Virus record (IMG/VR): IMGVR_UViG_3300023174_005338
Span: 248,001-312,000 of that record
DNA: 64,000 nucleotides
Reading direction: 5' to 3' (one strand)
Shown here in pieces: positions 23,583 to 46,921 of the stretch. A program made the position numbers and the translations under genes. Position 1 is the first letter of the stretch. Every line of letters begins with the position of its first letter. The notes under the pieces were generated by a model. The model had not been told where the DNA came from and ran no database searches. It saw nothing but the letters and a program-made list of their open reading frames with translations.

Positions 23583-23615
23583 TTGACATGTTGGGTTTTT
23601 GTGCTACAATAAATA
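23583..23615 (+). promoter_or_regulatory. Sigma70-like promoter with an overlapping late TAAATA box, upstream of gp55
   Basis: TTGACA (23583-88), 16-nt spacer ending in TGC, TACAAT (23605-10); TAAATA at 23610-15; GGAG Shine-Dalgarno before the GTG at 23635. Confidence 0.6.
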
Positions 23616-23634: not shown

Positions 23635-24537
23635 GTGTCAACCACACCCACAAGGACCCCAGCAAAAACCAACTATCTCAACAACAGAGATATCCTAAAA
23701 CAAATACACCTCAGCAAAAATAGCTACTGTACATACCTAGATCCAGTGACAGATCACCAGTATGACATCATCTTGCCCACAGTGGAACGAATCAATCAAA
23801 GAACCACAGCCGAGGCACGCAGAAACCGTGCTGAACGTATCAAGCGAGAAACTGGGCAGGTCATAGATCCCAAAAAAATCCCCAACACAGACTTGGTGTT
23901 CCGCATAACCTGCTGGGAACACATACCCATGGCGCCTAAAAAAGTGCCCAAGAGTTCGGCCAAGAAAAACAAAATTGAAGACATATTTGAACTGGACGTG
24001 TTGGAGGAAGACGATCCCTTGGCCGAGCTGATCGAAGAGCCTGTGCTGGATCCCAAACATGTGAGATTGAATTTTCCTCCGTTTTATCACTACCGCATAG
24101 ATAACAACAAACAACCGTACATCGTGGGCAAAAGCCACTGGAAGGGTGACCTGGAGCAGGGAGAGTTCAGCAAGGATCATGGCACCATGACCCGTACCTT
24201 GGCCACCATGTTTATCAAGCTGTGCGAACGCTATGCCACCCGATCAAACTGGCGTGGCTACACCTACAACGAGGAAATGCGTGGTCAGGCCTTACTACAG
24301 TTAAGCCAGATTGGCCTGCAGTTTGACGAGTCAAAAAGCCAAAATCCATTTGCTTATTACACCGCGGCCATTACCAACAGTTTCACACGTATCCTAAACT
24401 TGGAAAAGAAAAATCAAAACATCCGCGATGACATGTTGGAACAGGCCGGACTCAATCCATCATGGACTCGTCAGAATGCCGGTCGTAAGAATCCAGCACA
24501 GGCACCCGGAGAGGTTGTAATTGTCACAGAAGAATAG
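23635..24537 (+). CDS. gp55: Sigma factor for late transcription, gp55-like
   Basis: NYLNNRDIL N-terminus; LCERYATRSNWRGYTYNEEMRGQALLQL…FDESKSQNPFAYYTAAITNSFTRILNLEKK; upstream of gp47 as in T4-like phages. Confidence 0.85.
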   Translation: MSTTPTRTPAKTNYLNNRDILKQIHLSKNSYCTYLDPVTDHQYDIILPTVERINQRTTAEARRNRAERIKRETGQVIDPKKIPNTDLVFRITCWEHIPMAPKKVPKSSAKKNKIEDIFELDVLEEDDPLAELIEEPVLDPKHVRLNFPPFYHYRIDNNKQPYIVGKSHWKGDLEQGEFSKDHGTMTRTLATMFIKLCERYATRSNWRGYTYNEEMRGQALLQLSQIGLQFDESKSQNPFAYYTAAITNSFTRILNLEKKNQNIRDDMLEQAGLNPSWTRQNAGRKNPAQAPGEVVIVTEE

Positions 24538-24549
24538 TATACTAGCTGA

Positions 24550-25563
24550 ATGAGTCTATTCCGTAAAGTTGCTGTCTGCACCGATATACACTTTGGTCTC
24601 AAGTCCAACAGCCTACAACACAATCAAGATTGCAGTGATTTCATTGATTGGTTCATAGCCACAGCTCGAGCCAATGGTTGCGAGACCGGCATGTTCCTAG
24701 GCGACTGGAGCCATCAGCGTGCGGCCATTAACATGCAGACCTTGCAGTATAGCCTGCGTAGCTTGGAGAAGCTGAGTGCGGCATTTGACAGATTTTATTT
24801 TATTCCAGGCAACCATGATCTGTATTATCGTGACAAACGTGATATCTACAGCACAGAGTGGGCCCGTCACATACCCAACATCCAAATTGTTAATGATTGG
24901 TTCCAGGATGGCGACGTTGTGATCGCACCATGGCTGGTCGGGGACGATCACAAGCGTATCCCAAAACTCAAGGGTCAGTACATGTTTGGACACTTTGAAC
25001 TGCCACACTTCAAGATGAATGCCATGGTAGAAATGCCCGATCACGGTGACATACAGGTAGATCACTTTGGTGGGTTCGAACGTGTGTTCAGCGGACACTT
25101 CCACTTGAGACAGCAAAAGAAAAACATCAACTACATCGGCAACTGCTTTCCGCACAACTATGCCGATGCCGGTGATTCAGCACGTGGCATGATGACTCTG
25201 ACGTGGGGTCAAGAACCTGTGTTCCATGCCTGGCCCGGGCAACCTCTTTACAAGGTGCTGAAACTCAGCCAGGTCATAGATTCAGCTCCGTCATTGTTGG
25301 CCGCCAACATGCATGTGCGTGTGGAACTGGACATTGATATTTCGTATGAAGAAGCCAATTTCATCAAAGACACCTTTGTCAAGGATTACGATCTCAGAGA
25401 GATGGCCTTGATTCCAGTAAAGAGCACCGCAGTAGATGCCGACATGGCGCCCGGAGAAGTCAAATTCGAAAGTGTGGATCAGATTGTAACCGATCAGATC
25501 ACCAACATTGAAAGCGAATTCTATGATCCTAAATTATTGTTGAGGATATATCAATCCTTATAA
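24550..25563 (+). CDS. gp47: Recombination endonuclease subunit (Mre11/SbcD-like)
   Basis: Metallophosphoesterase motifs DIHFG, FLGDW, PGNHD, GHFE, SGHFH. Confidence 0.9.
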   Translation: MSLFRKVAVCTDIHFGLKSNSLQHNQDCSDFIDWFIATARANGCETGMFLGDWSHQRAAINMQTLQYSLRSLEKLSAAFDRFYFIPGNHDLYYRDKRDIYSTEWARHIPNIQIVNDWFQDGDVVIAPWLVGDDHKRIPKLKGQYMFGHFELPHFKMNAMVEMPDHGDIQVDHFGGFERVFSGHFHLRQQKKNINYIGNCFPHNYADAGDSARGMMTLTWGQEPVFHAWPGQPLYKVLKLSQVIDSAPSLLAANMHVRVELDIDISYEEANFIKDTFVKDYDLREMALIPVKSTAVDADMAPGEVKFESVDQIVTDQITNIESEFYDPKLLLRIYQSL

Positions 25564-25566
25564 ATA
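25559..25566 (+). promoter_or_regulatory. T4-type late promoter TATAAATA at the start of the inserted cassette
   Basis: Exact TATAAATA overlapping the gp47 stop codon, 38 nt upstream of the ATG at 25605. Confidence 0.45.
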
Positions 25567-25604
25567 TTGGATTGTTGTAGCATCTTACATTTATTTTCAT
25601 TACT

Positions 25605-27131
25605 ATGAGTCAACAAGTTCTCTCTCGGCATCTTTTGTGTCCCGATTTGAAATTTTATCAACACAATTTCGACACCAACCAAACTGCGGTCTTTGACTAC
25701 GACCAGTTCAGCCGCATGGTAGATTATTGGAAATTTATGTTGGTTGAAAAATACAATGTTCAACACGGGCAAACCGTGATGATTGAATTTAATCTCACCA
25801 ACATATACTATTTTACAGCTATTTTTGCGGCCTGGGAACTGGGTCTCGTGCTCATAGTTGATTGGATTCATGCGTACAGCGAACAGGAATGTCACGGAAA
25901 AAGTTTTACCATACACGGACAAATAGATCACGCCATAGTTTACAGTGAACAACTAAATCCCAACAACAAGAAATTTTATCTAGAATGGGATGTGTATCGC
26001 ACTCGTTTACACTGTCGTAATGTCATAACCGAAATAGATTTTAATAATTATGAAATTAAGGATCACAGTAAATTTGCGGAAATAGCTGAAACCGTTTACG
26101 CCAGGCCTGACAGCCAGGCCATTTGGACCGCAACCAGTGGTAGCACAGGCGATCCTAAACAACAACGCATAGACCACAGATCAGTGTTTCTACAGGCCAA
26201 ACGATTAATCAATCACCTGAATTTTAAACCAGAGCAATCGGTACTTCATACTCACAATGTGCATCACGGTGCTAGTGCTTGCTATCATTTTTTACCCAGT
26301 CTGATGACTTCTACCAACCATTATGTTATGAATTACGAGCATTGGAACGACACTCACAACAAACAATTGGCAGACTTTATTGAAAGTAGAAAGATAAACA
26401 AAATATTTTTGTACACGCCCGACAAGATCTTGGCTTATCTAAACTCTACTGATCCACTCCAGCATGAAGTAGAAATTACTACCTTGTATTTTTGCACCAA
26501 AGAAATTGTAAATTTAGCCAAAGAAAAAAATATCAAAGGCATTTATAGTGTGTTTGGTGACACAACCATTGCCTATGGGTTTTTGGTCAAGGTCGTAGAT
26601 TTGCAACAGTCGTTAAACACTTATGAACCCAGTTGTATAGGACCGCAACTAGACGATTTTTTTGATTTCAAGATTCAAGATGGTCATCTTTACATTCGAA
26701 GCAGTGGCTTAGGCAAAACAGAGTGGCAGACCAGTAAAGACAATTTTGAACTGAAAGATAACAAATATTATTTCCTAGGGCGCGGAACCGATTACCGCAT
26801 CAACGATGAATGGATCAATCACAACGAAATTGAAAGCAGGATCAATGAACTGTTTACTATCGATCAAAAAGAAGGTGCTACCATAGTAATTGACAACGAA
26901 GAACAACAGGTTTATTTGGCTATATGGATTGAAAATCCGCAAGCCGAACTTGAATTTGATCGTTGGTTAGCACAACGTTATAAAACTGTGACTATCACAA
27001 AACGAGCACGAGACTTAAACAAAAACGAATTCCTAGGGTCGAGAAAAGTCAGTCGGCAACTATTAAAGGAATACTTTAGATCCAAAGTCCAACGAATTTA
27101 CAGTTTCACTGATCCTTGGATATTATCTTAA
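25605..27131 (+). CDS. Divergent adenylate-forming (ANL / AMP-binding) enzyme
   Basis: A3-like loop WTATSGSTGDPKQQ; A7/A8-like WQTSKDNFELKDNKYYFLGRGTDYRINDE; A10-like SRKVSRQLL; 508 aa. Confidence 0.7.
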   Translation: MSQQVLSRHLLCPDLKFYQHNFDTNQTAVFDYDQFSRMVDYWKFMLVEKYNVQHGQTVMIEFNLTNIYYFTAIFAAWELGLVLIVDWIHAYSEQECHGKSFTIHGQIDHAIVYSEQLNPNNKKFYLEWDVYRTRLHCRNVITEIDFNNYEIKDHSKFAEIAETVYARPDSQAIWTATSGSTGDPKQQRIDHRSVFLQAKRLINHLNFKPEQSVLHTHNVHHGASACYHFLPSLMTSTNHYVMNYEHWNDTHNKQLADFIESRKINKIFLYTPDKILAYLNSTDPLQHEVEITTLYFCTKEIVNLAKEKNIKGIYSVFGDTTIAYGFLVKVVDLQQSLNTYEPSCIGPQLDDFFDFKIQDGHLYIRSSGLGKTEWQTSKDNFELKDNKYYFLGRGTDYRINDEWINHNEIESRINELFTIDQKEGATIVIDNEEQQVYLAIWIENPQAELEFDRWLAQRYKTVTITKRARDLNKNEFLGSRKVSRQLLKEYFRSKVQRIYSFTDPWILS

Positions 27132-27166
27132 AATTATGAATACATTTGTTATCAAGGAAATTTAAA

Positions 27167-28144
27167 ATGACATTTATTACCAAAATTTTTGACGGCTCAC
27201 AATCAGTAATAAAATTGTTGCTTGCAATTTTGTTGACGTGGGCAATTCCATCGTGGTCTGCAACATATCCATCGAAACCAGTGAAAATTATCATCAGCTT
27301 GCCGATAGGCAGTGGTCCAGATGCACAATTACGACGGGTGGCAGAAATACTGTCAGAAAAATGGAACCAACCTGTGGTTGTAGAAAATCGACCCGGAGCA
27401 TCTGGAATAGTGGCCATGAATCAAGTGGTAAATGAACCTGCCGATGGATATACATTAGGACTGTTTCACATGGGAGATATTGTGCCATTTCCTATTTTAT
27501 ACAACAACAACAAAGCTCTAGACAACCTAGTAGTACTGGCTCCATTTTTTACAGCAGACATGGCATTGTTTGTTAGCACCGGTGTTAAAAATCTTGAAGA
27601 GCTCAAACAACTTTTAAAAAGAAATCCCAATTATGGTTCCTGGGGAATAGGAAGCATACAGCATGTTGTCGGTGCAGAGTTTGTTAGTTTGTATGTTGAT
27701 AATGCCACCCATATTCCTTATCGAGACGGTAACTTGTTCACCGATGTAAGCACCAAAACATTGAGCTTTGGTTTTACTAGTCTGGGGTCTGGCAATGCTA
27801 TGTATCGTGCTAACAAGATTCATTATTTGGCCATTGCTACTGACCAACGGCACAAACAATTTCCTGATGTCCCGACTATTAGAGAACTAACTGGTAAAAA
27901 AATTGTGGCTCAGAGCTGGCTAGCATTCTTCGTAAAAAAAGGAATTCCTGATCCAGTCCGTCAACAAATAGAAAAAGATCTACGTGTAGCTATTGCAGAT
28001 CAAAGAATGCAAGATTTTTTACTTGAAAATTATTTTATACCTCTCAACAACACAAGTTTAAATCAGTTTGTAAAACAAATTGAGCACGAACGTTCGGTTT
28101 ACAAAAACAATCTTCAACGACACAAAATCAGTCTTACGCAATGA
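27167..28144 (+). CDS. Bug/TctC-family tripartite tricarboxylate transporter substrate-binding protein
   Basis: Signal-peptide-like N-terminus, then YPSKPVKIII…QPVVVENRPGASG…ADGYTL and …FPDVPTIRE…W signature. ATG at 27167 has an AAGGA Shine-Dalgarno, preferred over the TTG at 27146. Confidence 0.88.
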   Translation: MTFITKIFDGSQSVIKLLLAILLTWAIPSWSATYPSKPVKIIISLPIGSGPDAQLRRVAEILSEKWNQPVVVENRPGASGIVAMNQVVNEPADGYTLGLFHMGDIVPFPILYNNNKALDNLVVLAPFFTADMALFVSTGVKNLEELKQLLKRNPNYGSWGIGSIQHVVGAEFVSLYVDNATHIPYRDGNLFTDVSTKTLSFGFTSLGSGNAMYRANKIHYLAIATDQRHKQFPDVPTIRELTGKKIVAQSWLAFFVKKGIPDPVRQQIEKDLRVAIADQRMQDFLLENYFIPLNNTSLNQFVKQIEHERSVYKNNLQRHKISLTQ

Positions 28145-29409
28145 CCCATTACTGGCCCGATCAAAACACCAGCAGAATTCCCTATTGGGCCTATACCGAC
28201 ACTGATGTATATCAGCAAGAATTACAAAAAATTTGGTATGGACCGCATTGGTGTTATGTTGGGCTTGAATGCGAAATACCCAACACGAATGATTTCAAAC
28301 TCGGCTGGGTAGGAGAGCGCGAAGTAATAGTTACTAGAGATCTAGATGGCATCCATGTGGTAGAAAATCGGTGCGCTCACAGAGGTGTTCGTTTTTGTCA
28401 AAAACAAACAGGAAATACCGAGAAATTTGTGTGTGCATATCATCAATGGAGGTACAATCTCAAGGGAGATCTTGTCAGTGTACCTTTTGAAAAAGGCGCA
28501 CCCAAAAATGGAGAAATCTGTGGAGGCATGCCAGATAATTTTGACAAGCATAATCATGGGCTGGTAAAATTGCATGTGGCTGTTTTGCACGGAGTGATAT
28601 TTGCCACGTTTGATGACAGTGTGTGTGGCATAGAACAATATTTAGGACCCGAAATACTGCCTTGGTTTGAAAGAACATTCAAAGGTCGGACACTGAAATT
28701 GCTAGGACATAATCGTCAAGAAATCAAAGGCAATTGGAAATTGATGATGGAAAACATCAAAGATCCTTATCACCCTGGTTTATTGCACACATGGTTTGTG
28801 ACTTTTGGTTTGTTCAGGGCCGATCAATCCACAAGCAGAATGGTCATTGACAAAGAAGGACGTCATGCAGTCATGTTGAATCGTCGCAATCGTGGAATAG
28901 CCAACGAAGTAACCAAAGGAGTTGAATCGTTCAAGCCCAAAATGCAGTTGAACGATACTAGATTATTAGACATAGTCGAAGAGCCATGGTGGACTGTGCC
29001 AGACCCCAATGACCCCAAACAACCCATCAACCCTACAAACTGCATGCAAACAATTTTTCCTAGCCTGATAATTCAACAACAGATCAACAGCATGAGCACA
29101 CGACATATTGTGCCTCGCGGTCCCGGGTGTTTTGAATTTACCTGGACCCATTTTGCTTTTTCAGACGACTCAGAGGACATGATTCAACGCAGACTTAGAC
29201 AAGCAAATCTTTTTGGACCAGCCGGATTTGTCAGCGCCGACGATGGTGAAGTGTTGGAGTTATCACAGCAAGGTTTTAATCAATGGCGCACAGATGGAGA
29301 ATTACTGGTAGAATTAGGTGGGCCAGATTCTGGACAAACTACCGAGCACATGGTCACAGAAACTCTGATCAGGGGCATGTATAGATACTACAGAAAAATA
29401 ATGGCATGA
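28141..29409 (+). CDS. nagG: Rieske aromatic ring-hydroxylating oxygenase alpha subunit, salicylate 5-hydroxylase large subunit-like
   Basis: Rieske ligands CAH…CAYH; mononuclear-Fe region ENIKDPYHPGLLHTWF and QANLFGPAGFVSADDGEV; SRIPYWAYT start and HMVTETLIRGMY end match NagG as I recall it. Confidence 0.88.
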   Translation: MTHYWPDQNTSRIPYWAYTDTDVYQQELQKIWYGPHWCYVGLECEIPNTNDFKLGWVGEREVIVTRDLDGIHVVENRCAHRGVRFCQKQTGNTEKFVCAYHQWRYNLKGDLVSVPFEKGAPKNGEICGGMPDNFDKHNHGLVKLHVAVLHGVIFATFDDSVCGIEQYLGPEILPWFERTFKGRTLKLLGHNRQEIKGNWKLMMENIKDPYHPGLLHTWFVTFGLFRADQSTSRMVIDKEGRHAVMLNRRNRGIANEVTKGVESFKPKMQLNDTRLLDIVEEPWWTVPDPNDPKQPINPTNCMQTIFPSLIIQQQINSMSTRHIVPRGPGCFEFTWTHFAFSDDSEDMIQRRLRQANLFGPAGFVSADDGEVLELSQQGFNQWRTDGELLVELGGPDSGQTTEHMVTETLIRGMYRYYRKIMA

Positions 29410-29879
29410 AGGATCTGGAACTTAAATTTCAAATTGATCAACTAAATGCCTGCTATGGCGATGCGTTGGATCGACATGATTACAACACATGGATGAATTT
29501 TTTTGAAGAAGAATGTTTGTATTTGGTGCAAAGTCGAGAAAATTTTGATCGCAACTTGCCTCTTGCATTGATACGATTGGAAAGCCATCGTATGATGCAA
29601 GATCGAGTTTATGGTTGCATGGACACAATTTTTCATCAAGAATATTATCAGCGTCATATAATTTCAGGTTGTGTGATTAGCAAAATAGAAAATAACAAAA
29701 TTTTTACTAGAACAAATTACACAGTTTTTAGAACCAAACCCACAGAATCTTCAGAAGTATTCAATGTTGGGTGCTATCACGATGTCTGGTCGCAACGACA
29801 CACCGGGCCAAAGTTGGCTGAACGCAAATGTGTTTACGACAGCGAAATGATTTTGAATGCGTTAATATATCCAATTTAA
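29406..29879 (+). CDS. nagH: Ring-hydroxylating oxygenase beta subunit, salicylate 5-hydroxylase small subunit-like
   Basis: SRENFDRNLPLALIRLESHRMMQDRVYG…YYQRHI…CVYDSEMILNALIYPI; ATGA overlap with the alpha subunit. Confidence 0.85.
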   Translation: MKDLELKFQIDQLNACYGDALDRHDYNTWMNFFEEECLYLVQSRENFDRNLPLALIRLESHRMMQDRVYGCMDTIFHQEYYQRHIISGCVISKIENNKIFTRTNYTVFRTKPTESSEVFNVGCYHDVWSQRHTGPKLAERKCVYDSEMILNALIYPI

Positions 29880-29916: not shown

Positions 29917-31680
29917 ATGATTCAAATAAAAAATCTCACAGTAAAAAACTTTATGAGCGTGGGCAACGCCACGCAAGGCATCGACTTTGATCGACGCGAC
30001 TTGACACTTGTGTTGGGCGAGAACTTGGATCTTGGTGGCGACGGAAGCCGCAACGGCACAGGTAAAACTACTATAATCAATGCTCTTAGCTACAGCTTGT
30101 ATGGGCAAGCATTAAGTAACATCCGCAAGGACAACTTAGTCAACAAAACCAACAACAAAAACATGTTGGTCAGTTTGGATTTCAGTGTGGACGGCAAAGA
30201 TTACCGGATTGAACGAGGCCGTAAACCCAACCTGCTGAGATTCTTTGTAAACAATCAAGAGCAAGTGGTCACAGACGAAGCACAAGGCGACAGCCGAGAA
30301 ACACAGGATGCCATTGAACATACCTTGGGCCTCAGTCACGACATGTTCAAACACATTCTGGCACTCAACACTTACACAGAACCGTTTCTGAGTCTCAAAG
30401 CCACAGATCAAAGAACCATCATTGAACAACTCCTGGGCATAACCATGCTGAGCGAGCGTGCCGATCGAATCAAAGAACACAACAGATCCACCAAAGAAGC
30501 CATACAGCAAGAAGAATTCCGTATTCGAGCTGTTCAAGAAGCCAATAAAAGGATAGAAGAACAGATTGAGGCTTTACGACGTAGACAGACATTATGGGTG
30601 ACTAAACATGAAGAAGAGATTACCAAACTCGAAACCGCGCTCGAAGAACTCAAAAAGATTGACATTGAAGCCGAGATTGCGGCCCACAAGGCGCACAAAG
30701 TATGGGATCAGAAGCGCAAGGACCTTAACGACCTGGCTGGACAGATCTCCCGCACGAAGCTTGATAAGGACCGCGAGAACAAAAGCATTGAGAAGCTTGG
30801 CAAGGAGATTGCGACACTTGAAGATCACACATGTCACACTTGCGGGCAGGCTTTCCACGACCATAAGCACCAACAGGTCCTGGCGGGTAAGCAGGCTGAT
30901 CTGGCAAGAGCGCGAGAAGCGTGCCAAGAACATACACAGCTCCTTTCAGAACTCGAGACTGCCCACACAGCCTTGGGCACGTTAGGGCGACCACCTGCTA
31001 TGTTCTATGATAGTGAAGAGGATGCCATACAACATCGTAGCAGCATGGCTGCCTTGCAAACTCAATTGACAAACAAACAGGCCGAAACAGATCCCTACGG
31101 CGAGCAGATAGCGGACATGCAAGGTCAGGCTTTGCAGGTAGTAAGCTATGACACACTCAATGAGCTGACCAGACTTCAGGAACATCAAGACTTCTTGCTC
31201 AAACTTTTGACCAGCAAGGATTCATTCATACGCAAAAAAATCATTGAACAGAATTTGAGTTATTTGAATGCCAGACTCACACACTACCTGGATAGGATTG
31301 GCCTGCCGCATACCGTGGTGTTCCAGAACGATTTGACTGTGAGCATCGAGGAGCTGGGTCGTGAGCTGGACTTTGACAATTTGAGTCGTGGCGAACGCAA
31401 CAGATTGATCTTGAGCATGAGCTGGGCCTTTCGTGATGTGTTTGAAAGCCTATACCAGCCCATCAATGTGCTGTTCATAGACGAAATGATTGATTCGGGC
31501 CTGGACACACAGGGTGTAGAAAATGCTCTTGCGTTGCTGAAGCACATGAGCCGCGAACGGCACAAGAGTATTTGGTTGGTCAGCCACAGAGATGAGCTAG
31601 CCGGAAGAGTTGAAAACATACTCCGAGTGGTCAAAGAAGGCGGCTTTACCAGTTACAACACGGATGTAGAAATTGCGTAG
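29917..31680 (+). CDS. gp46: Recombination endonuclease ATPase subunit (Rad50/SbcC-like)
   Basis: KNFMSVGN, Walker A NGTGKT, zinc hook CHTC, signature LSRGE, Walker B LFIDE, H-loop VSH. Confidence 0.92.
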   Translation: MIQIKNLTVKNFMSVGNATQGIDFDRRDLTLVLGENLDLGGDGSRNGTGKTTIINALSYSLYGQALSNIRKDNLVNKTNNKNMLVSLDFSVDGKDYRIERGRKPNLLRFFVNNQEQVVTDEAQGDSRETQDAIEHTLGLSHDMFKHILALNTYTEPFLSLKATDQRTIIEQLLGITMLSERADRIKEHNRSTKEAIQQEEFRIRAVQEANKRIEEQIEALRRRQTLWVTKHEEEITKLETALEELKKIDIEAEIAAHKAHKVWDQKRKDLNDLAGQISRTKLDKDRENKSIEKLGKEIATLEDHTCHTCGQAFHDHKHQQVLAGKQADLARAREACQEHTQLLSELETAHTALGTLGRPPAMFYDSEEDAIQHRSSMAALQTQLTNKQAETDPYGEQIADMQGQALQVVSYDTLNELTRLQEHQDFLLKLLTSKDSFIRKKIIEQNLSYLNARLTHYLDRIGLPHTVVFQNDLTVSIEELGRELDFDNLSRGERNRLILSMSWAFRDVFESLYQPINVLFIDEMIDSGLDTQGVENALALLKHMSRERHKSIWLVSHRDELAGRVENILRVVKEGGFTSYNTDVEIA

Positions 31681-32539
31681 AATACGAGTCTTACACATTG
31701 AACCCACCGACGTTTGTCAGGCTGCATGCCCGTTGTGTGCCCGAGAGACTGACCCAAACTTTAATAAAAGTTTAAAGCATCATCTCAGAGTAGAGCACAT
31801 ACAAAAACATTTTTCAGAACAAGTAATTTCCAAACTGGATAAAATGTTCATGTGTGGCAATTATGGTGATCCGGCTGCAGGCTACTATACCATGGACATC
31901 TACAACCACTTTAGAAAAGTCAATCCAGAAATTGTGTTGGGTATGAACACCAATGGTGCTGTGCAAAGCACGTTCTTTTGGCATGCGTTGGGACGATTGT
32001 TCAATCAGCCCAAAGATTATTGTGTGTTTAGCATAGACGGATTAGAGGATACCAATCACGTTTATCGTAAAAATGTCAATTGGGCCAAGCTAATGAGCAA
32101 CGTTCAAGCCTACATTGCCGCAGGTGGAAGTGCCCATTGGGACATGCTGGTGTACAAACACAATCAACATCAAGTGGATGCTTGCCAGCAACTGGCTCGT
32201 GACATGGGATTCAAGTGGTTCCGTGCCAAGGTCAGCAAGCGTGGATTCACTGATCATTTAGAATTTCCCATCGGGTGGCAACCGCCTGCGGTCAAGGCGG
32301 GGCCCATCAAATGCCATGTGATTAATGAAAAAAGCATGTACATTGATGCGCAAGGTCGTGCCAGTGCCTGTTGCTGGCTTGGTGCCACGCAACAAGATTT
32401 TGTCAAAGATGATTTGGCAACTGTAAAATTAACTTGGAAAACAGACACACCCAATCCGGTGTGTGTCAGTGCTTGTTCCACAAACAAAAATAAAACCGTA
32501 TTCCAAGACCAATGGCAACGCGAGGTACAACTGTGTTAG
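31673..32539 (+). CDS. Radical SAM protein with a C-terminal Cys-rich (Twitch/SPASM-like) region
   Basis: CQAACPLC (CxxxCxxC), CGNYGDP, NTNG, FSIDG; C-terminal KC…ACCW…CVSAC; TTG start overlaps the gp46 end. Confidence 0.85.
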   Translation: MRRIRVLHIEPTDVCQAACPLCARETDPNFNKSLKHHLRVEHIQKHFSEQVISKLDKMFMCGNYGDPAAGYYTMDIYNHFRKVNPEIVLGMNTNGAVQSTFFWHALGRLFNQPKDYCVFSIDGLEDTNHVYRKNVNWAKLMSNVQAYIAAGGSAHWDMLVYKHNQHQVDACQQLARDMGFKWFRAKVSKRGFTDHLEFPIGWQPPAVKAGPIKCHVINEKSMYIDAQGRASACCWLGATQQDFVKDDLATVKLTWKTDTPNPVCVSACSTNKNKTVFQDQWQREVQLC

Positions 32540-33543
32540 CCACCTGGCATTTTCATATCGAAATCAGTTCAAAGTGTACCCTGCGTTGCCCACGCTGTGC
32601 CAGACAAGAGGTTCCCGACAGTTTAGTAAACACTGAACTGGATTTAGAATTTTTTAAAAGAAACTTTACCGCAGAGTTTGTTCTTGACAATGTAGAAAAG
32701 ATCACATTTTGTGGTGACGACGGTGATCCTATCTATGCTCACGACCTTATACCAGTGATTCAATACATCAAGTCAATCAAACCTGTTGAGATTGTAGTTG
32801 TCACAAATGGATCACACAAGAAACCAGAATGGTGGCGTGAACTTGGTGGCGTGCTTAGTGAGCAAGATACTGTACACTTTAGCATCGACGGTTGGGACTA
32901 CCCAAGCAACAATCTGTATCGTGTCAACAGTGATTTCAACAGTATTGTCGACGGAATCACTGCACTACGATCAACCTCTGAGTGCCACCTTGTGTGGGCT
33001 GCCATTGTCTTTGGGTTCAATGAACACCAACTGGGCGCTATGAAAAATCATGCACGTTTGCTAGATATGGATGTATTTCAACTTACCAAGAGCACCAAGT
33101 TTGGCTCCGTTTATCTCTCCTACGGTCCAATCGATGAGCTAGAGCCCAGCCGGCCGTTTGTCAGCAGTTCACACAGATTTGAGAGAGATGTTACACCGAT
33201 AAGCTCGCGTGGACTCAATTCACAGACAAACACCAAGAACATACAATTATACAAATCTGCTGTAGAGATCAACGGTGTAAAACCCCTGTGTGAAATTGGC
33301 AACAAAGGACTTTATATTGACGCCCAAGGTAGATTATTCCCTTGCTGTTGGGTAGCAAACCGCTACAGTCACAATTCAGAATGGAAAGCTATTGCTAACA
33401 AATTTGATTTGAATCGTCGCACACTGGCCGACGCTGTAACTGACGATTTTTGGTCAACAACATTTAAAACCTTTGGGTGGCAAGAGTGCCAGACTAAGTG
33501 TGTAGCGAGCAGGGTAAATGAAAAATATGCAACTGAGTGGTAA
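32533..33543 (+). CDS. Second radical SAM protein, paralogous to the upstream one
   Basis: CTLRCPRC, FCGDDGDP, VTNGS, FSIDG; C-terminal LC…PCCW…CQTKC. Probable GTG start at 32533; the track uses the ATG at 32512. Confidence 0.85.
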   Translation: MLATWHFHIEISSKCTLRCPRCARQEVPDSLVNTELDLEFFKRNFTAEFVLDNVEKITFCGDDGDPIYAHDLIPVIQYIKSIKPVEIVVVTNGSHKKPEWWRELGGVLSEQDTVHFSIDGWDYPSNNLYRVNSDFNSIVDGITALRSTSECHLVWAAIVFGFNEHQLGAMKNHARLLDMDVFQLTKSTKFGSVYLSYGPIDELEPSRPFVSSSHRFERDVTPISSRGLNSQTNTKNIQLYKSAVEINGVKPLCEIGNKGLYIDAQGRLFPCCWVANRYSHNSEWKAIANKFDLNRRTLADAVTDDFWSTTFKTFGWQECQTKCVASRVNEKYATEW

Positions 33544-33561
33544 AATGATAAATTATAGTCC

Positions 33562-33990
33562 ATGGTATGGCTGTACGAAAACACTCCGATTGAACAACTA
33601 CCCGAAGACTGTGTTGGTTTTGTTTATTTGATCACAAATAACGTTACCGGCAGAAAGTACATTGGAAAAAAATTAGCAAAGTTTAGCAAGACCTCATATC
33701 GAGTAGTAAAATTAAAGAACGGCTACAAGAAACGTAAAAAGATAAGAAGCAAAATAGATTCAGACTGGCAACTATACTATGGCAGCAACGATCAACTCAA
33801 CCGAGACATTGCAGAGCTGGGCTCAGACAACTTCACAAGAGAAATATTGTTTTATTGCCGATCAAAAGCAGAATGCAGTTATGTTGAAGCACGCGAACAA
33901 TTCAATCATAAAGTATTGGAATCAGATGACTACTACAATGGACAGATTGTTTGCCGTATACACGGAAGTCATATAAAAAACAAAATTTAA
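33562..33990 (+). CDS. Small GIY-YIG-family nuclease
   Basis: GFVYLITNNVTGRKYIGKK, YYGS, FTREIL…E…YYN; 142 aa; single catalytic domain. Confidence 0.75.
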   Translation: MVWLYENTPIEQLPEDCVGFVYLITNNVTGRKYIGKKLAKFSKTSYRVVKLKNGYKKRKKIRSKIDSDWQLYYGSNDQLNRDIAELGSDNFTREILFYCRSKAECSYVEAREQFNHKVLESDDYYNGQIVCRIHGSHIKNKI

Positions 33991-44914: not shown

Positions 44915-44961
44915 GTTGATTACAAGTTTAGGTAAAAGTGAGGTTTATCATAAATAATATT

Positions 44962-45720
44962 ATGAACAAATACAAAACTTGGTATAACAACATTACTGAA
45001 AACGCCAAAACTCGTATATCGGATGGATATACGGAACGGCATCACATTATCCCTCGAAGCCTAGGCGGATCTGACAGTAAAGAAAACTTAGTTGATCTCA
45101 CAGCCAGAGAACATTTCATATGTCATTGGTTACTGATTAAAATGCATACTGGCGAATCAAAAGCTAAAATGATTTATGCTCTAAATGGTATGAAACGAAA
45201 TGGCAGATTTAACGAAAGATATGAAACCAAAATAACAAGTAGAGTTTATGAAAAGCTCAAACAAGAATTTTCTCTTATACACTCTGCCAACATGAAAGGT
45301 CGCACTGCCCACAATAAAGGTGTTCCTGCCACAGAAGAACAAAAAGAAAAAAATAGGCTGGCCGCAAAAGGTAGGAAGATGAGTCCAGAATCAATCGCGA
45401 AAGGTGTAGCCAAGCGCCGCGGACAAAAAAGAACAGAAGAGCAAAAGGCAAAAATTGCAAAATCAGTAAAAGAAGCACTTGCTAAAAACCCAAGAGGCCC
45501 AATGAGCGATGAACATAAGTTAAAAAGGTCATTAGCATCATTGGGTAAACCAAAGCCAGCTGGGCATACTGAAAGAAGACTTGCGACTCTTGCCAAGCAG
45601 TTGGCAGAAGGCACGCATTATAGTCAACAAAAAAAGACCTGTCCACACTGCGGAGTAGTTGCAAGTAAAGGTCCTTACACAAGGTATCACGGACCTCACT
45701 GCCAGGCCCTCAAACCTTAA
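44962..45720 (+). CDS. Free-standing HNH homing endonuclease with NUMOD3-like basic repeats
   Basis: YTERHHIIPRSLGGSDSKENLVDLTAREHFICHWLL; basic repeats (MSPESIAK, RTEEQKAKI, MSDEHKLK); C-terminal CPHC; AT-rich. ATG at 44962 preferred. Confidence 0.85.
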   Translation: MNKYKTWYNNITENAKTRISDGYTERHHIIPRSLGGSDSKENLVDLTAREHFICHWLLIKMHTGESKAKMIYALNGMKRNGRFNERYETKITSRVYEKLKQEFSLIHSANMKGRTAHNKGVPATEEQKEKNRLAAKGRKMSPESIAKGVAKRRGQKRTEEQKAKIAKSVKEALAKNPRGPMSDEHKLKRSLASLGKPKPAGHTERRLATLAKQLAEGTHYSQQKKTCPHCGVVASKGPYTRYHGPHCQALKP

Positions 45721-46862
45721 ACCTTGAACCAGCCCAGGTACTGATGTATACGATCTGTGACCGACGCCCAGTCACCCATGGCAGGTTGACGGAACAGTCG
45801 GGCAGTGGTATACCATGGACTGCTGTCACGATCCAGCAACCAACGCCAATCCAAGGCAAATTGACTCAGCATGACCCAGACCGGACGACCCAGAGCACCA
45901 GCCAAGTGTGCCACAGCAGTGTCTACCGCAAGTACCACATCCATGTGCATGATCAAGGCCGCCGAGTCTGCAAAACTTTGTATGGCACCCGGGTAGGCCT
46001 TGACGCCGGCAGACAACAACTCAGCTTCTTCCTCTGCGGTGCAATCAACCTGTAGGTTGACCCACTCGTAGTGGGGATTTCTTTTTATCAATGACAACAT
46101 TTCGCCAAAGGGCATGGCCTTGTGTCGATTGATCCAGGTATCTCTGCGACCCGACCAACAAAATCCCACACGCAGGCGTGTTTTTGGACCCAACTGTTGT
46201 TGCCAGGCCTGTTGCAATTTGGCATCAGCGGTTAGATAGTACTGTACACTGGCAAGATTTTCCAGGGTCGATCCAACGATGCCTGGGATACTCATGATAG
46301 GAGTCCAATAGTCAAATGCCGGCAATGTTTCACCAAATGCAACAATGGTCTTGATTTCTGGACTTTGAAACAACGGTATCAACAATTTGTCAACAACCAA
46401 CACAGACTGTGCACCTCTTGCGGTAATGTCGGTTACAAATCTCACAAACTGTATGTTATCGCCATGCCCCTGCTCGCCAATGATCAACACGGTTTTGCCC
46501 GTGATGTCCTGGCCAGTCCAACGCGGCTGATCAAATTTTGGCAGTGTGCCAGCTAGATGTTCGTAGTTCCAGCGTGTTTCGTACTGCGGCCAACCACGGG
46601 CATAATCACCCATCAACAGATAGGCCACGGCCAAATTAAATGGAGCGGTAGGATGGCCTGGAGCCAACTGCATGCTTCGTTGCAAAAACGGAACAGCACC
46701 TGCAGGATCACCGCACTCGCGTAGCACATTGCCATAGTTGTTGAATGCACTGGCCGAATTTCTATCTTGAATCAAGGCCTGTGCATAGTATTGTAGAGCC
46801 AGTTCGGGGGTGTTGTTTTCCCGGGCTTGATTGCCTAACGCTATGAGTTCTTCTGTGTGCAT
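45717..46862 (-). CDS. TPR-repeat protein with a GT-B glycosyltransferase (GT9-like) domain
   Basis: TPR helices, then YETRW, EQGHGDNIQFVRF, RVGFCWSG, DVVLAVDTAVAHLAGALG, DWRW…SPWY. ATG at 46862 lies 5 nt after TAAATA; the track uses 46883. Confidence 0.8.
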   Translation of the reverse strand: MHTEELIALGNQARENNTPELALQYYAQALIQDRNSASAFNNYGNVLRECGDPAGAVPFLQRSMQLAPGHPTAPFNLAVAYLLMGDYARGWPQYETRWNYEHLAGTLPKFDQPRWTGQDITGKTVLIIGEQGHGDNIQFVRFVTDITARGAQSVLVVDKLLIPLFQSPEIKTIVAFGETLPAFDYWTPIMSIPGIVGSTLENLASVQYYLTADAKLQQAWQQQLGPKTRLRVGFCWSGRRDTWINRHKAMPFGEMLSLIKRNPHYEWVNLQVDCTAEEEAELLSAGVKAYPGAIQSFADSAALIMHMDVVLAVDTAVAHLAGALGRPVWVMLSQFALDWRWLLDRDSSPWYTTARLFRQPAMGDWASVTDRIHQYLGWFKV

Positions 46863-46921
46863 GGTTCTATTTAATTTGTGCATAGATCTCCAAAATATTT
46901 GTTGTTGAATAAATACTTGTC

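Follow-up and report, generated by a model that had tools for sequence, protein, structure and literature searches.

What are four genes of apparent small-molecule metabolism doing between gp47 and gp46 of a T4-type phage, and did they arrive there as one piece of bacterial DNA? The genes lie in a 64-kb stretch, hereafter the window, that covers positions 248001 to 312000 of IMGVR_UViG_3300023174_005338, a 337,119-bp contig from an uncultured T4-type jumbo phage. All four are + strand open reading frames (ORFs), and they encode, in order, an adenylate-forming enzyme of the ANL superfamily, a Bug/TctC periplasmic solute-binding protein (Bug), and the alpha and beta subunits of a Rieske non-haem-iron oxygenase (Table 1). 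A first-pass annotation, made from the letters of the window alone, had described them as an aromatic-acid cassette inserted into the phage. We conclude that they form a real, conserved, and previously undescribed multi-gene module of auxiliary metabolic genes (AMGs) that undergoes modular exchange. As to what the module does, we lean with modest confidence toward a role in which it takes up an aryl carboxylate, most probably salicylate, by way of a host tripartite tricarboxylate transporter (TTT) and then hydroxylates the acid, adenylates it, or does both.

A recurrent module between gp47 and gp46

The interval between gp47 and gp46, which we call the slot, is empty in the nearest cultured relatives: gp47 abuts gp46 in PA5oct, and a single 80-amino-acid ORF lies between them in Atu_ph07. 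This bears out the premise of the annotation that the two genes are normally adjacent. Within the window, ORF calls, base composition, and domain matches agree that four co-oriented, AT-richer genes split the pair, while the domain matches and the T4-type structural genes nearby uphold the gene identities and the phage setting as first proposed. The ATGA overlaps of Bug with alpha and of alpha with beta were likewise verified in the sequence. The Bug ORF opens with a TTG at 27146; its likely start is the ATG at 27167, which follows AAGGAA and agrees with a 325-amino-acid database gene call.

Table 1. Slot genes, flanking genes, and nearby elements, in window coordinates (aa, amino acids)
Feature	Positions	Strand	Basis and remarks
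TAAATAT elements	15546, 23542, 25561, 36719, 38826, 40957, 56447	sense	7-38 nt 5' of gene starts
Sigma-70-like promoter, predicted (TTGACA-16-TACAAT with TG)	23583-23610	+	consensus scan, 11/12 matches
gp55-like late sigma factor	23635-24537	+	phrog_12791, 5e-75; position same in all relatives
gp47/SbcD/Mre11-like nuclease subunit	24550-25563	+	left slot border; Metallophos 5e-7; phrog_100 SbcD-like 9e-55
TATAAATAT, late-promoter-like element	25559-25567	+	38 nt 5' of ANL start; overlaps gp47 stop codon
ANL-superfamily adenylate-forming enzyme	25605-27131	+	508 aa; PF00501 AMP-binding 3.5e-11, 43 bits vs 29.9 cut-off
Bug/TctC periplasmic solute-binding protein	27167-28144	+	PF03401 7.7e-39, 134 bits vs 27 cut-off
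Rieske non-haem-iron oxygenase alpha, NagG-like	28141-29409	+	422 aa; Pfam Rieske and Ring_hydroxyl_A
Oxygenase beta, NagH-like, NTF2-like	29406-29879	+	157 aa; Ring_hydroxyl_B PF00866 3e-13
gp46/SbcC/Rad50-like ATPase	29917-31680	+	right slot border; SMC_N, AAA_23; phrog_77 SbcC-like 3e-100
Tandem radical SAM genes	31673-32539, 32512-33543		immediately 3' of gp46
SegE-type GIY-YIG homing endonuclease	33562-33990		PF19835, 7e-34; very low GC, 0.37
HNH-endonuclease-like ORF	44938-45720	+	near major head protein gene
Tetratricopeptide repeat protein	45717-46883	-	weak glycosyltransferase family 9 match; near major head protein gene

We surveyed the slot in 21 IMG/VR loci and in contigs from ENA and JGI, labelling the loci with L-numbers. 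The survey shows that the arrangement is not confined to the window. The four-gene order ANL-Bug-alpha-beta is found in L004 and L115 as well as in the window, and viral contigs hold several variants of it between gp47 and gp46: Bug-alpha-beta (L002 and L003), ANL-alpha-beta (L113/L114; protein P0012 on 20 contigs), Bug-ANL (L007, L009, L012/13, L015, and L016/17), ANL-Bug (L022, L024, and L025/26/30), ANL-Bug-ANL (L023), and a distant ANL alone (L027 and L028/29). Altogether more than 15 contigs of related phages have Bug and/or ANL in the slot, mostly without an oxygenase, which tells against a single block freshly inserted from a bacterium. The same junctions appear in different samples and from different assemblers (IMG/VR 3300042889, JGI 3300045703, and the ENA GALA18 and MUNK22 assemblies).

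The distribution of these variants points to exchange. Bugs that stand beside alpha-beta form one clade (support 95), as do the ANLs that stand beside alpha-beta (100), and the trees indicate that Bug and ANL co-vary as pairs, with at least three co-evolving Bug/ANL types. On the trees of gp46 and gp47, by contrast with this coherence, the loci with alpha-beta do not group together (they need 5 and 3 changes, and strongly supported branches force at least 4 and at least 2 of these), and the window and L115 group with L015, which has Bug-ANL, and L027, which has ANL only. This scatter shows that whole modules have been swapped between phage backbones; and because relatives hold alternative versions at the same place, the gene set looks like an exchangeable nutrient-handling module. 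Identity of gp47 among these relatives is 62 to 88%. One locus has a further irregularity: relative to the near-identical L002, L003 has three extra ORFs with no family found between gp47 and Bug (L003:723-2692), and a duplicated 32-residue gp46 N terminus lies 5' of Bug (72% identical, 2597-2692). The gp46 fragment may be a scar of recombination or insertion.

Selection on the slot genes was estimated from the ratio of nonsynonymous to synonymous substitution rates (dN/dS) in close pairs only, dS being saturated between the window and its relatives. Between L002 and L003 the ratio is 0.021 for alpha, 0.129 for beta, and 0.05 for Bug; from other close pairs, ANL has ratios of 0.117 and 0.046, and Bug one of 0.04. 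Comparisons of Bug that include L115 gave alignment artefacts and were excluded. These ratios are similar to those of gp46 and gp47 (0.04 to 0.06) and indicate that the slot genes are under purifying selection, contrary to the neutral evolution that the annotation had named as a possible refutation. In keeping with what defines AMGs, the genes are metabolic, lie in a bona fide phage genome between phage core genes, recur, and evolve under purifying selection.

We also considered the low GC content of the slot as a mark of recent foreign insertion. The four genes have a GC content of 0.36 to 0.43 (0.31 to 0.40 at third codon positions [GC3]), against 0.47 to 0.48 (GC3, 0.54 to 0.55) for gp47 and gp46. 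That interpretation was rejected: the offset is common to all relatives, with the slot genes 4 to 10 GC points under their flanks in every one, and its direction is opposite to that expected of Comamonadaceae, whose DNA has a GC content of 60 to 70%. A fresh transfer from such a donor would raise the GC content, which the low value contradicts, and with every relative showing the offset, AT-richness is a stable trait of the slot.

The claim of a box before the cassette survived in part. The box, TATAAATA, is present at 25559-25566, but the exact 8-mer has a count of 1 against 0.98 expected, and it was rejected as an enriched late promoter on the ground that its frequency is that of chance. A positional test of the TAAATAT family, used in its place, did find enrichment: seven of nine copies lie 5 to 50 nt 5' of gene starts in sense orientation (P ~1e-11), six of the seven before structural genes and one before ANL. 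In the closest relative, L115, TAAATA is found at -54, and in most relatives the first slot gene directly abuts gp47. TAAATAT looks like the form that the T4 late promoter takes in this phage, where the gp55-like sigma factor would serve it, and a late promoter is plausible here because a gp55-type sigma is encoded 1 kb 5'. In addition, the predicted sigma-70-like promoter, a strong one, sits ahead of a + strand block comprising gp55, gp47, the module, gp46, and the radical SAM genes; no terminator-like site was found on the + strand inside this block.

As a rule, a phage auxiliary gene is a lone enzyme copied from its host; for nutrient capture, an example of an AMG is cyanophage pstS, which encodes a periplasmic phosphate-binding protein. 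Among SUP05 viruses, another transport gene, tctA, has been named a putative AMG (PMC4164917). The slot module follows the same logic as AMGs of the pstS and tctA type, in which a binding protein or bottleneck enzyme supplied by the phage plugs into host machinery. It differs from them in comprising several genes and in existing as several exchangeable types at one fixed slot. What makes it unusual is the combination of a secreted binding protein, a phage-only ANL, and a complete two-subunit Rieske oxygenase, traded as alternative types. PHROGs contains no family for any of the four slot proteins, and in the literature we found no description of Bug, ANL, or NagGH genes in phages.

The slot proteins and their ancestry

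The oxygenase resembles NagGH, as first proposed. Its alpha and beta subunits match the two chains of a crystallised salicylate 5-hydroxylase, NagGH of Ralstonia sp. U2, with E values of 1e-165 (7c8z_A) and 1e-35 (7c8z_B), and alpha is 59% identical to NagG of Sphingobium pNIN2 and 60% identical to the homologue of Achromobacter xylosoxidans pA81. Against the NCBIfam model AndAc, alpha scores 358 bits, under the cut-off of 750. The motifs CAH, CAYH, DPYHPGLLH, and SADDG, which the annotation had identified with the Rieske and iron sites, are present and invariant among relatives. Across 15 aligned phage and bacterial sequences, the Rieske ligands (C78/H80 and C98/H101), the bridging D208, the iron ligands H211 and H216, and D367/D368 of SADDG are all invariant, and one of the last two would be the carboxylate iron ligand. 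In the substrate pocket, R321 aligns with NagG R323 and M245 with NagG M257, both invariant in the phage sequences and in the sister clade described below. This comparison covers the two residues as they are quoted in PMC9060491, where R323 is said to form a salt bridge with the carboxylate of the substrate. Judged by these residues, the oxygenase looks competent and suited to an aryl carboxylate. Unlike NagGH, whose homologous operons on pNIN2 and pA81 have the order nagAa-G-H-Ab, the phage pair has no adjacent nagAa or nagAb, belongs to a sister clade, carries an 11-residue insertion, is phage encoded, and stands in an operon with Bug through the ATGA overlaps.

To place the oxygenase, we built a tree of 95 alpha sequences. 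The 15 phage alphas (the window, three IMG/VR loci, and eleven metagenome proteins) are monophyletic (SH-aLRT 99) and sister (99) to stand-alone alpha-beta pairs of Comamonadaceae/Burkholderiales, plus Ferrovibrio. These pairs, found in Ramlibacter, Caenimonas, Polaromonas, Hydrogenophaga, and Curvibacter, are the nearest cellular relatives, with 62 to 66% identity, and they share with the phage pair both the insertion, which is not in NagG, and the absence of adjacent redox partners. They differ in being chromosomal, in the length of alpha (430 to 441 amino acids versus 422 to 425 in phages), and in having an adjacent Bug in one sister-clade locus only (L041). No NagAa or NagAb gene was found within 8 kb of the sister-clade genes, whereas true nag operons have both; unlinked redox partners are presumably normal for this clade, given that no ferredoxin or reductase is adjacent there. 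The stand-alone pair, as the donor lineage, itself appears unstudied. In Ramlibacter it adjoins amiC-tsaE-queG, uvrD, or mutL, and the neighbourhood in L005 and L006 consists of a glycine-zipper protein, amiC, tsaE, and queG. Two contigs in the tree are probably mis-binned: L038, filed as a Synechococcus metagenome-assembled genome (MAG) though it falls inside the Comamonadaceae clade, and L106, filed as a Klebsiella pneumoniae MAG, in a distant Alphaproteobacteria-rich clade.

Those metagenome members of the phage alpha clade that were looked up all lie in the same phage slot, which argues that alpha-beta was taken once from a Burkholderiales/Comamonadaceae-like bacterium and has since had a long residence in phages. 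Of the proposal that a bacterial cassette was inserted, the bacterial origin of alpha-beta thus stands; ANL and Bug, which fall in phage-only lineages, do not conform to it. The statement that no characterized phage is known to have such an oxygenase also agrees with our searches, as 50,697 cultured/GenBank phage records yielded no counterpart of alpha (best matches, at most 29% identity). Eight of the nine alpha-matching records are contigs of 'Acinetobacter phage MD-2021a' (CAKLQH02/CAKLQF02) that carry antA and benA and look bacterial. A partial Rieske-alpha-like match is present in MT835496.1, a 159-kb gut 'Bacteriophage sp.'

The Bug protein matches Bug27, BugE, BugD, and a terephthalate-binding protein in the PDB (1e-19 to 7e-24). 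It has the PF03401 domain, signal peptide, and carboxylate-binding loops in common with Bug27, BugD, BugE, TphC, and AdpC. By inspection, a signal peptide with a basic N terminus, a hydrophobic core, and an AxA-like site is present in 13 of 13 aligned phage Bugs, and the ligand loops GSGPD and GIGSxxH are conserved among them. The phage proteins differ from bacterial Bug/TctC proteins in forming deep clades of their own, which hold phage sequences only, and in the absence of tctA and tctB from every phage locus seen; the nearest named bacterial protein, from Limnohabitans, is 36% identical. In Burkholderiales it is typical for Bug genes to be orphans, with no tctAB beside them.

The ANL enzyme is far more divergent from known proteins. 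A single-sequence search of the PDB gave no match, a profile search gave weak matches only, the best of them to nonribosomal peptide synthetase (NRPS) adenylation domains and EntE, and all NCBIfam scores are far under the cut-offs. An AlphaFold2 model (pLDDT 88, pTM 0.83) predicts a complete two-domain ANL fold, which Foldseek matched to many ANL structures with probability 1.0, among them McyG-A, ACSM2A, PchD, and EntE with E ~1e-20 at 12 to 17% identity. The top 50 Foldseek matches (E, 2e-21 to 2.5e-18) lie within about three orders of magnitude and come from several subfamilies. The P-loop TSGSTGDPK (A3), the A7 Asp (D379), the A8 Arg (R393), and the A10 Lys (K481) are conserved, so that the fold and these motifs are shared with EntE, DhbE, PchD, AuaEII, MenE, and 4-chlorobenzoate-CoA ligase, although no subfamily is clearly closest. 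An invariant Gly, G222, occupies the position of PheA Asp235, the residue that binds the amino group in amino-acid adenylation domains, and activity on alpha-amino acids is disfavoured for this reason. Aryl-acid adenylating enzymes and aryl-CoA ligases likewise have no Asp at this amino-acid-recognising A4 position.

A word search of 5.8 billion proteins returned 89 relatives of the ANL, none from a named organism, and an exhaustive profile search found at least 175 clusters (50% identity) at E ≤ 1e-30. All ten clusters sampled across the range are unnamed metagenome proteins, and both of those that could be placed are on phage-like contigs. From these samples the family appears to be restricted to phages, which would make it an uncharacterised family of enzymes that is readily approached by experiment. 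Two loci carry a pair of divergent ANL paralogues: in L023 (5565-9452) they lie on either side of Bug, and in L117 (8001-9449 and 13632-14933) they are 4 kb apart with no Bug.

Proposed uptake of an aryl carboxylate and its alternatives

How might these proteins work together? We propose that the gp47-gp46 junction would serve as a slot for swappable small-molecule modules whose core is a phage-specific secreted Bug and a phage-specific ANL, with a NagGH-type two-subunit oxygenase added in one module type, that of the window. During infection, Bug would be exported to the periplasm and would hand an aryl carboxylate, with salicylate or a close analogue as the lead, to host TctAB. In the cytoplasm, an alpha3beta3 oxygenase would use host ferredoxin and reductase to hydroxylate the free acid (salicylate to gentisate). 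ANL would adenylate the acid or its product and probably transfer it to coenzyme A (CoA), trapping the compound and committing it to host pathways. A large, slow phage could thereby gain additional carbon and energy, or one particular building block. Of the possible reactions, salicylate to gentisate comes first on account of the identity of alpha to NagG and the conserved pocket residues, and the retention of Bug-alpha-beta without ANL in L002 and L003 fits an oxygenase that acts on an imported free acid. We infer which acid is the substrate, that host TctAB and host ferredoxin serve as partners, what ANL uses as acceptor, and what the module is for.

Several observations weigh against uptake and hydroxylation of salicylate. 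An external ferredoxin and reductase are needed, as the annotation had pointed out, and the phage does not appear to supply them: NagAa/NagAb probes found nothing in the 64-kb window of the 337-kb contig (best tblastn E, 0.46), neither partner appeared in probes or gene tables of the related phage loci, and a NagAb-type ferredoxin profile had no match in IMG/VR. TctA and TctB are absent from the phage-locus gene tables and from the scanned window ORFs, and neither the 64-kb window nor any related locus showed a gentisate-pathway gene, though 273 kb of the contig lay outside the scan. With no gene for either redox partner or for TctAB turning up, the module would depend on the host for these. 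The ancestry of the oxygenase is a second concern. The clade formed by the phage and stand-alone sequences is sister to a broader group that holds the operonic NagG clade, and because alpha sits in a sister clade, other aryl or heteroaryl carboxylates are possible substrates. The nearest bacterial relatives are uncharacterised, with housekeeping neighbourhoods and no gentisate pathway around them, and of 82 bacterial loci scanned (L005, L006, and L031-L110), only 3 have a Bug gene within 2.5 kb of alpha-beta. Finally, the ANL has low identity to any solved ANL enzyme, and its distant members (L116, L117, L027, and L028) adjoin replication genes and have no Bug within 8 kb on either side, so its role may be noncatabolic.

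A wider form of the uptake reading can be put forward tentatively. It is possible that widespread, apparently freshwater, jumbo phages hold exchangeable capture-and-activate modules at one slot, with Bug/ANL types tuned to different carboxylates and one type extended to aromatic hydroxylation. If so, they would represent an unrecognised class of phage nutrient piracy in which the TTT transporters and redox chains of the host are hijacked; in a more exotic form, the modules would make some new product, acyl or aryl modified, that the phage requires. If the Bugs do use host TTT transporters, these phages would reprogram organic-acid uptake in infected Burkholderiales cells, with a bearing on carbon flow in lakes rich in humic or aromatic acids. 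Several sample names resemble a lake series.

The main rival places ANL at the centre of a biosynthetic module, in which the imported acid, hydroxylated in the case of the window, is joined to an amine, thiol, or carrier to yield a specialised molecule or to modify some phage or host component (DNA, protein, or envelope). We regard this as somewhat unlikely. It would account for the confinement of so many ANL clusters to phage-like contigs, for the replication and recombination neighbourhoods in which ANL is found, including those of the distant members that lack a nearby Bug, and for the NRPS adenylation domains and EntE as the best profile matches; in addition, the window, L009, L023, L024, L025, L113, and L115 each have one or two radical SAM genes after gp46. 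However, no carrier-protein gene was found in the window or the related loci, and in no locus do the neighbours include a carrier protein, condensation domain, or transferase. L002 and L003 keep Bug-alpha-beta with no ANL to do the joining, Foldseek does not separate NRPS-type from CoA-ligase-type relatives, and no modified product is known.

Alternatively, the phage could import and destroy salicylate or a related acid to block a stress, defence, or receptor-repression response of the host, in which case removal of a signal or toxin would be the purpose. Salicylate regulates stress and porin expression in several Proteobacteria, and it is the oxygenase step alone that accompanies Bug in L002 and L003. 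The survey of the slot makes this quite improbable in our judgment, as most phages of the lineage have Bug and ANL without an oxygenase, in at least two other types, and a range of substrates fits that pattern better; nor was any link found between the host and salicylate signalling. That the locus is an assembly chimera, bacterial contamination, or a neutrally decaying passenger, as a composition unlike the flanks and a metagenome assembly as source might suggest, has a negligible chance of being correct and was rejected as far as sequence data allow, given that the junctions recur across samples and assemblers, the GC content is under the phage average and not raised as in Comamonadaceae DNA, with the same offset in every relative, and the ORFs are intact, with conserved catalytic residues and dN/dS values of 0.02 to 0.13.

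The phage and the surroundings of the slot

The window carries T4-type genes for baseplate wedge, hub/lysozyme, portal, major head protein, prohead protease, a gp15-like sheath stabiliser, and a T4 baseplate protein, in addition to the gp55-like late sigma factor. A DNA search of cultured phages matched only short stretches of gp46 and gp47: PA5oct-like Pseudomonas jumbo phages are about 65% alike over a part of gp46, and Agrobacterium phage Atu_ph07 is 78% alike over 94 bp of gp47. No tRNA genes were found in the window. The affinities of Bug and the oxygenase suggest a host in Burkholderiales, probably one of the freshwater Comamonadaceae.

Of the tandem radical SAM genes immediately 3' of gp46, one or both are kept at the same place in the six relatives named above. 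Their matches are generic (tungsten-cofactor maturase-like, MoaA-like, and twitch/SPASM-like) and all far under cut-offs. The SegE-type homing endonuclease gene that comes next is also found 3' of gp46 or of the radical SAM genes in L007, L009, L113, and L115, and such an enzyme might promote swapping of the adjacent slot. Near the major head protein gene, the window holds an HNH-endonuclease-like ORF and, on the opposite strand, the tetratricopeptide repeat protein gene listed in Table 1. In a distant locus, L008 (JGI 3300051399, a 94-kb contig), ANL and Bug lie outside the gp47-gp46 slot, in an unusually chaperone-rich neighbourhood with genes for a ClpX-like protein, ribosomal protein S21, GroES, GroEL, HSP20, and ClpS.

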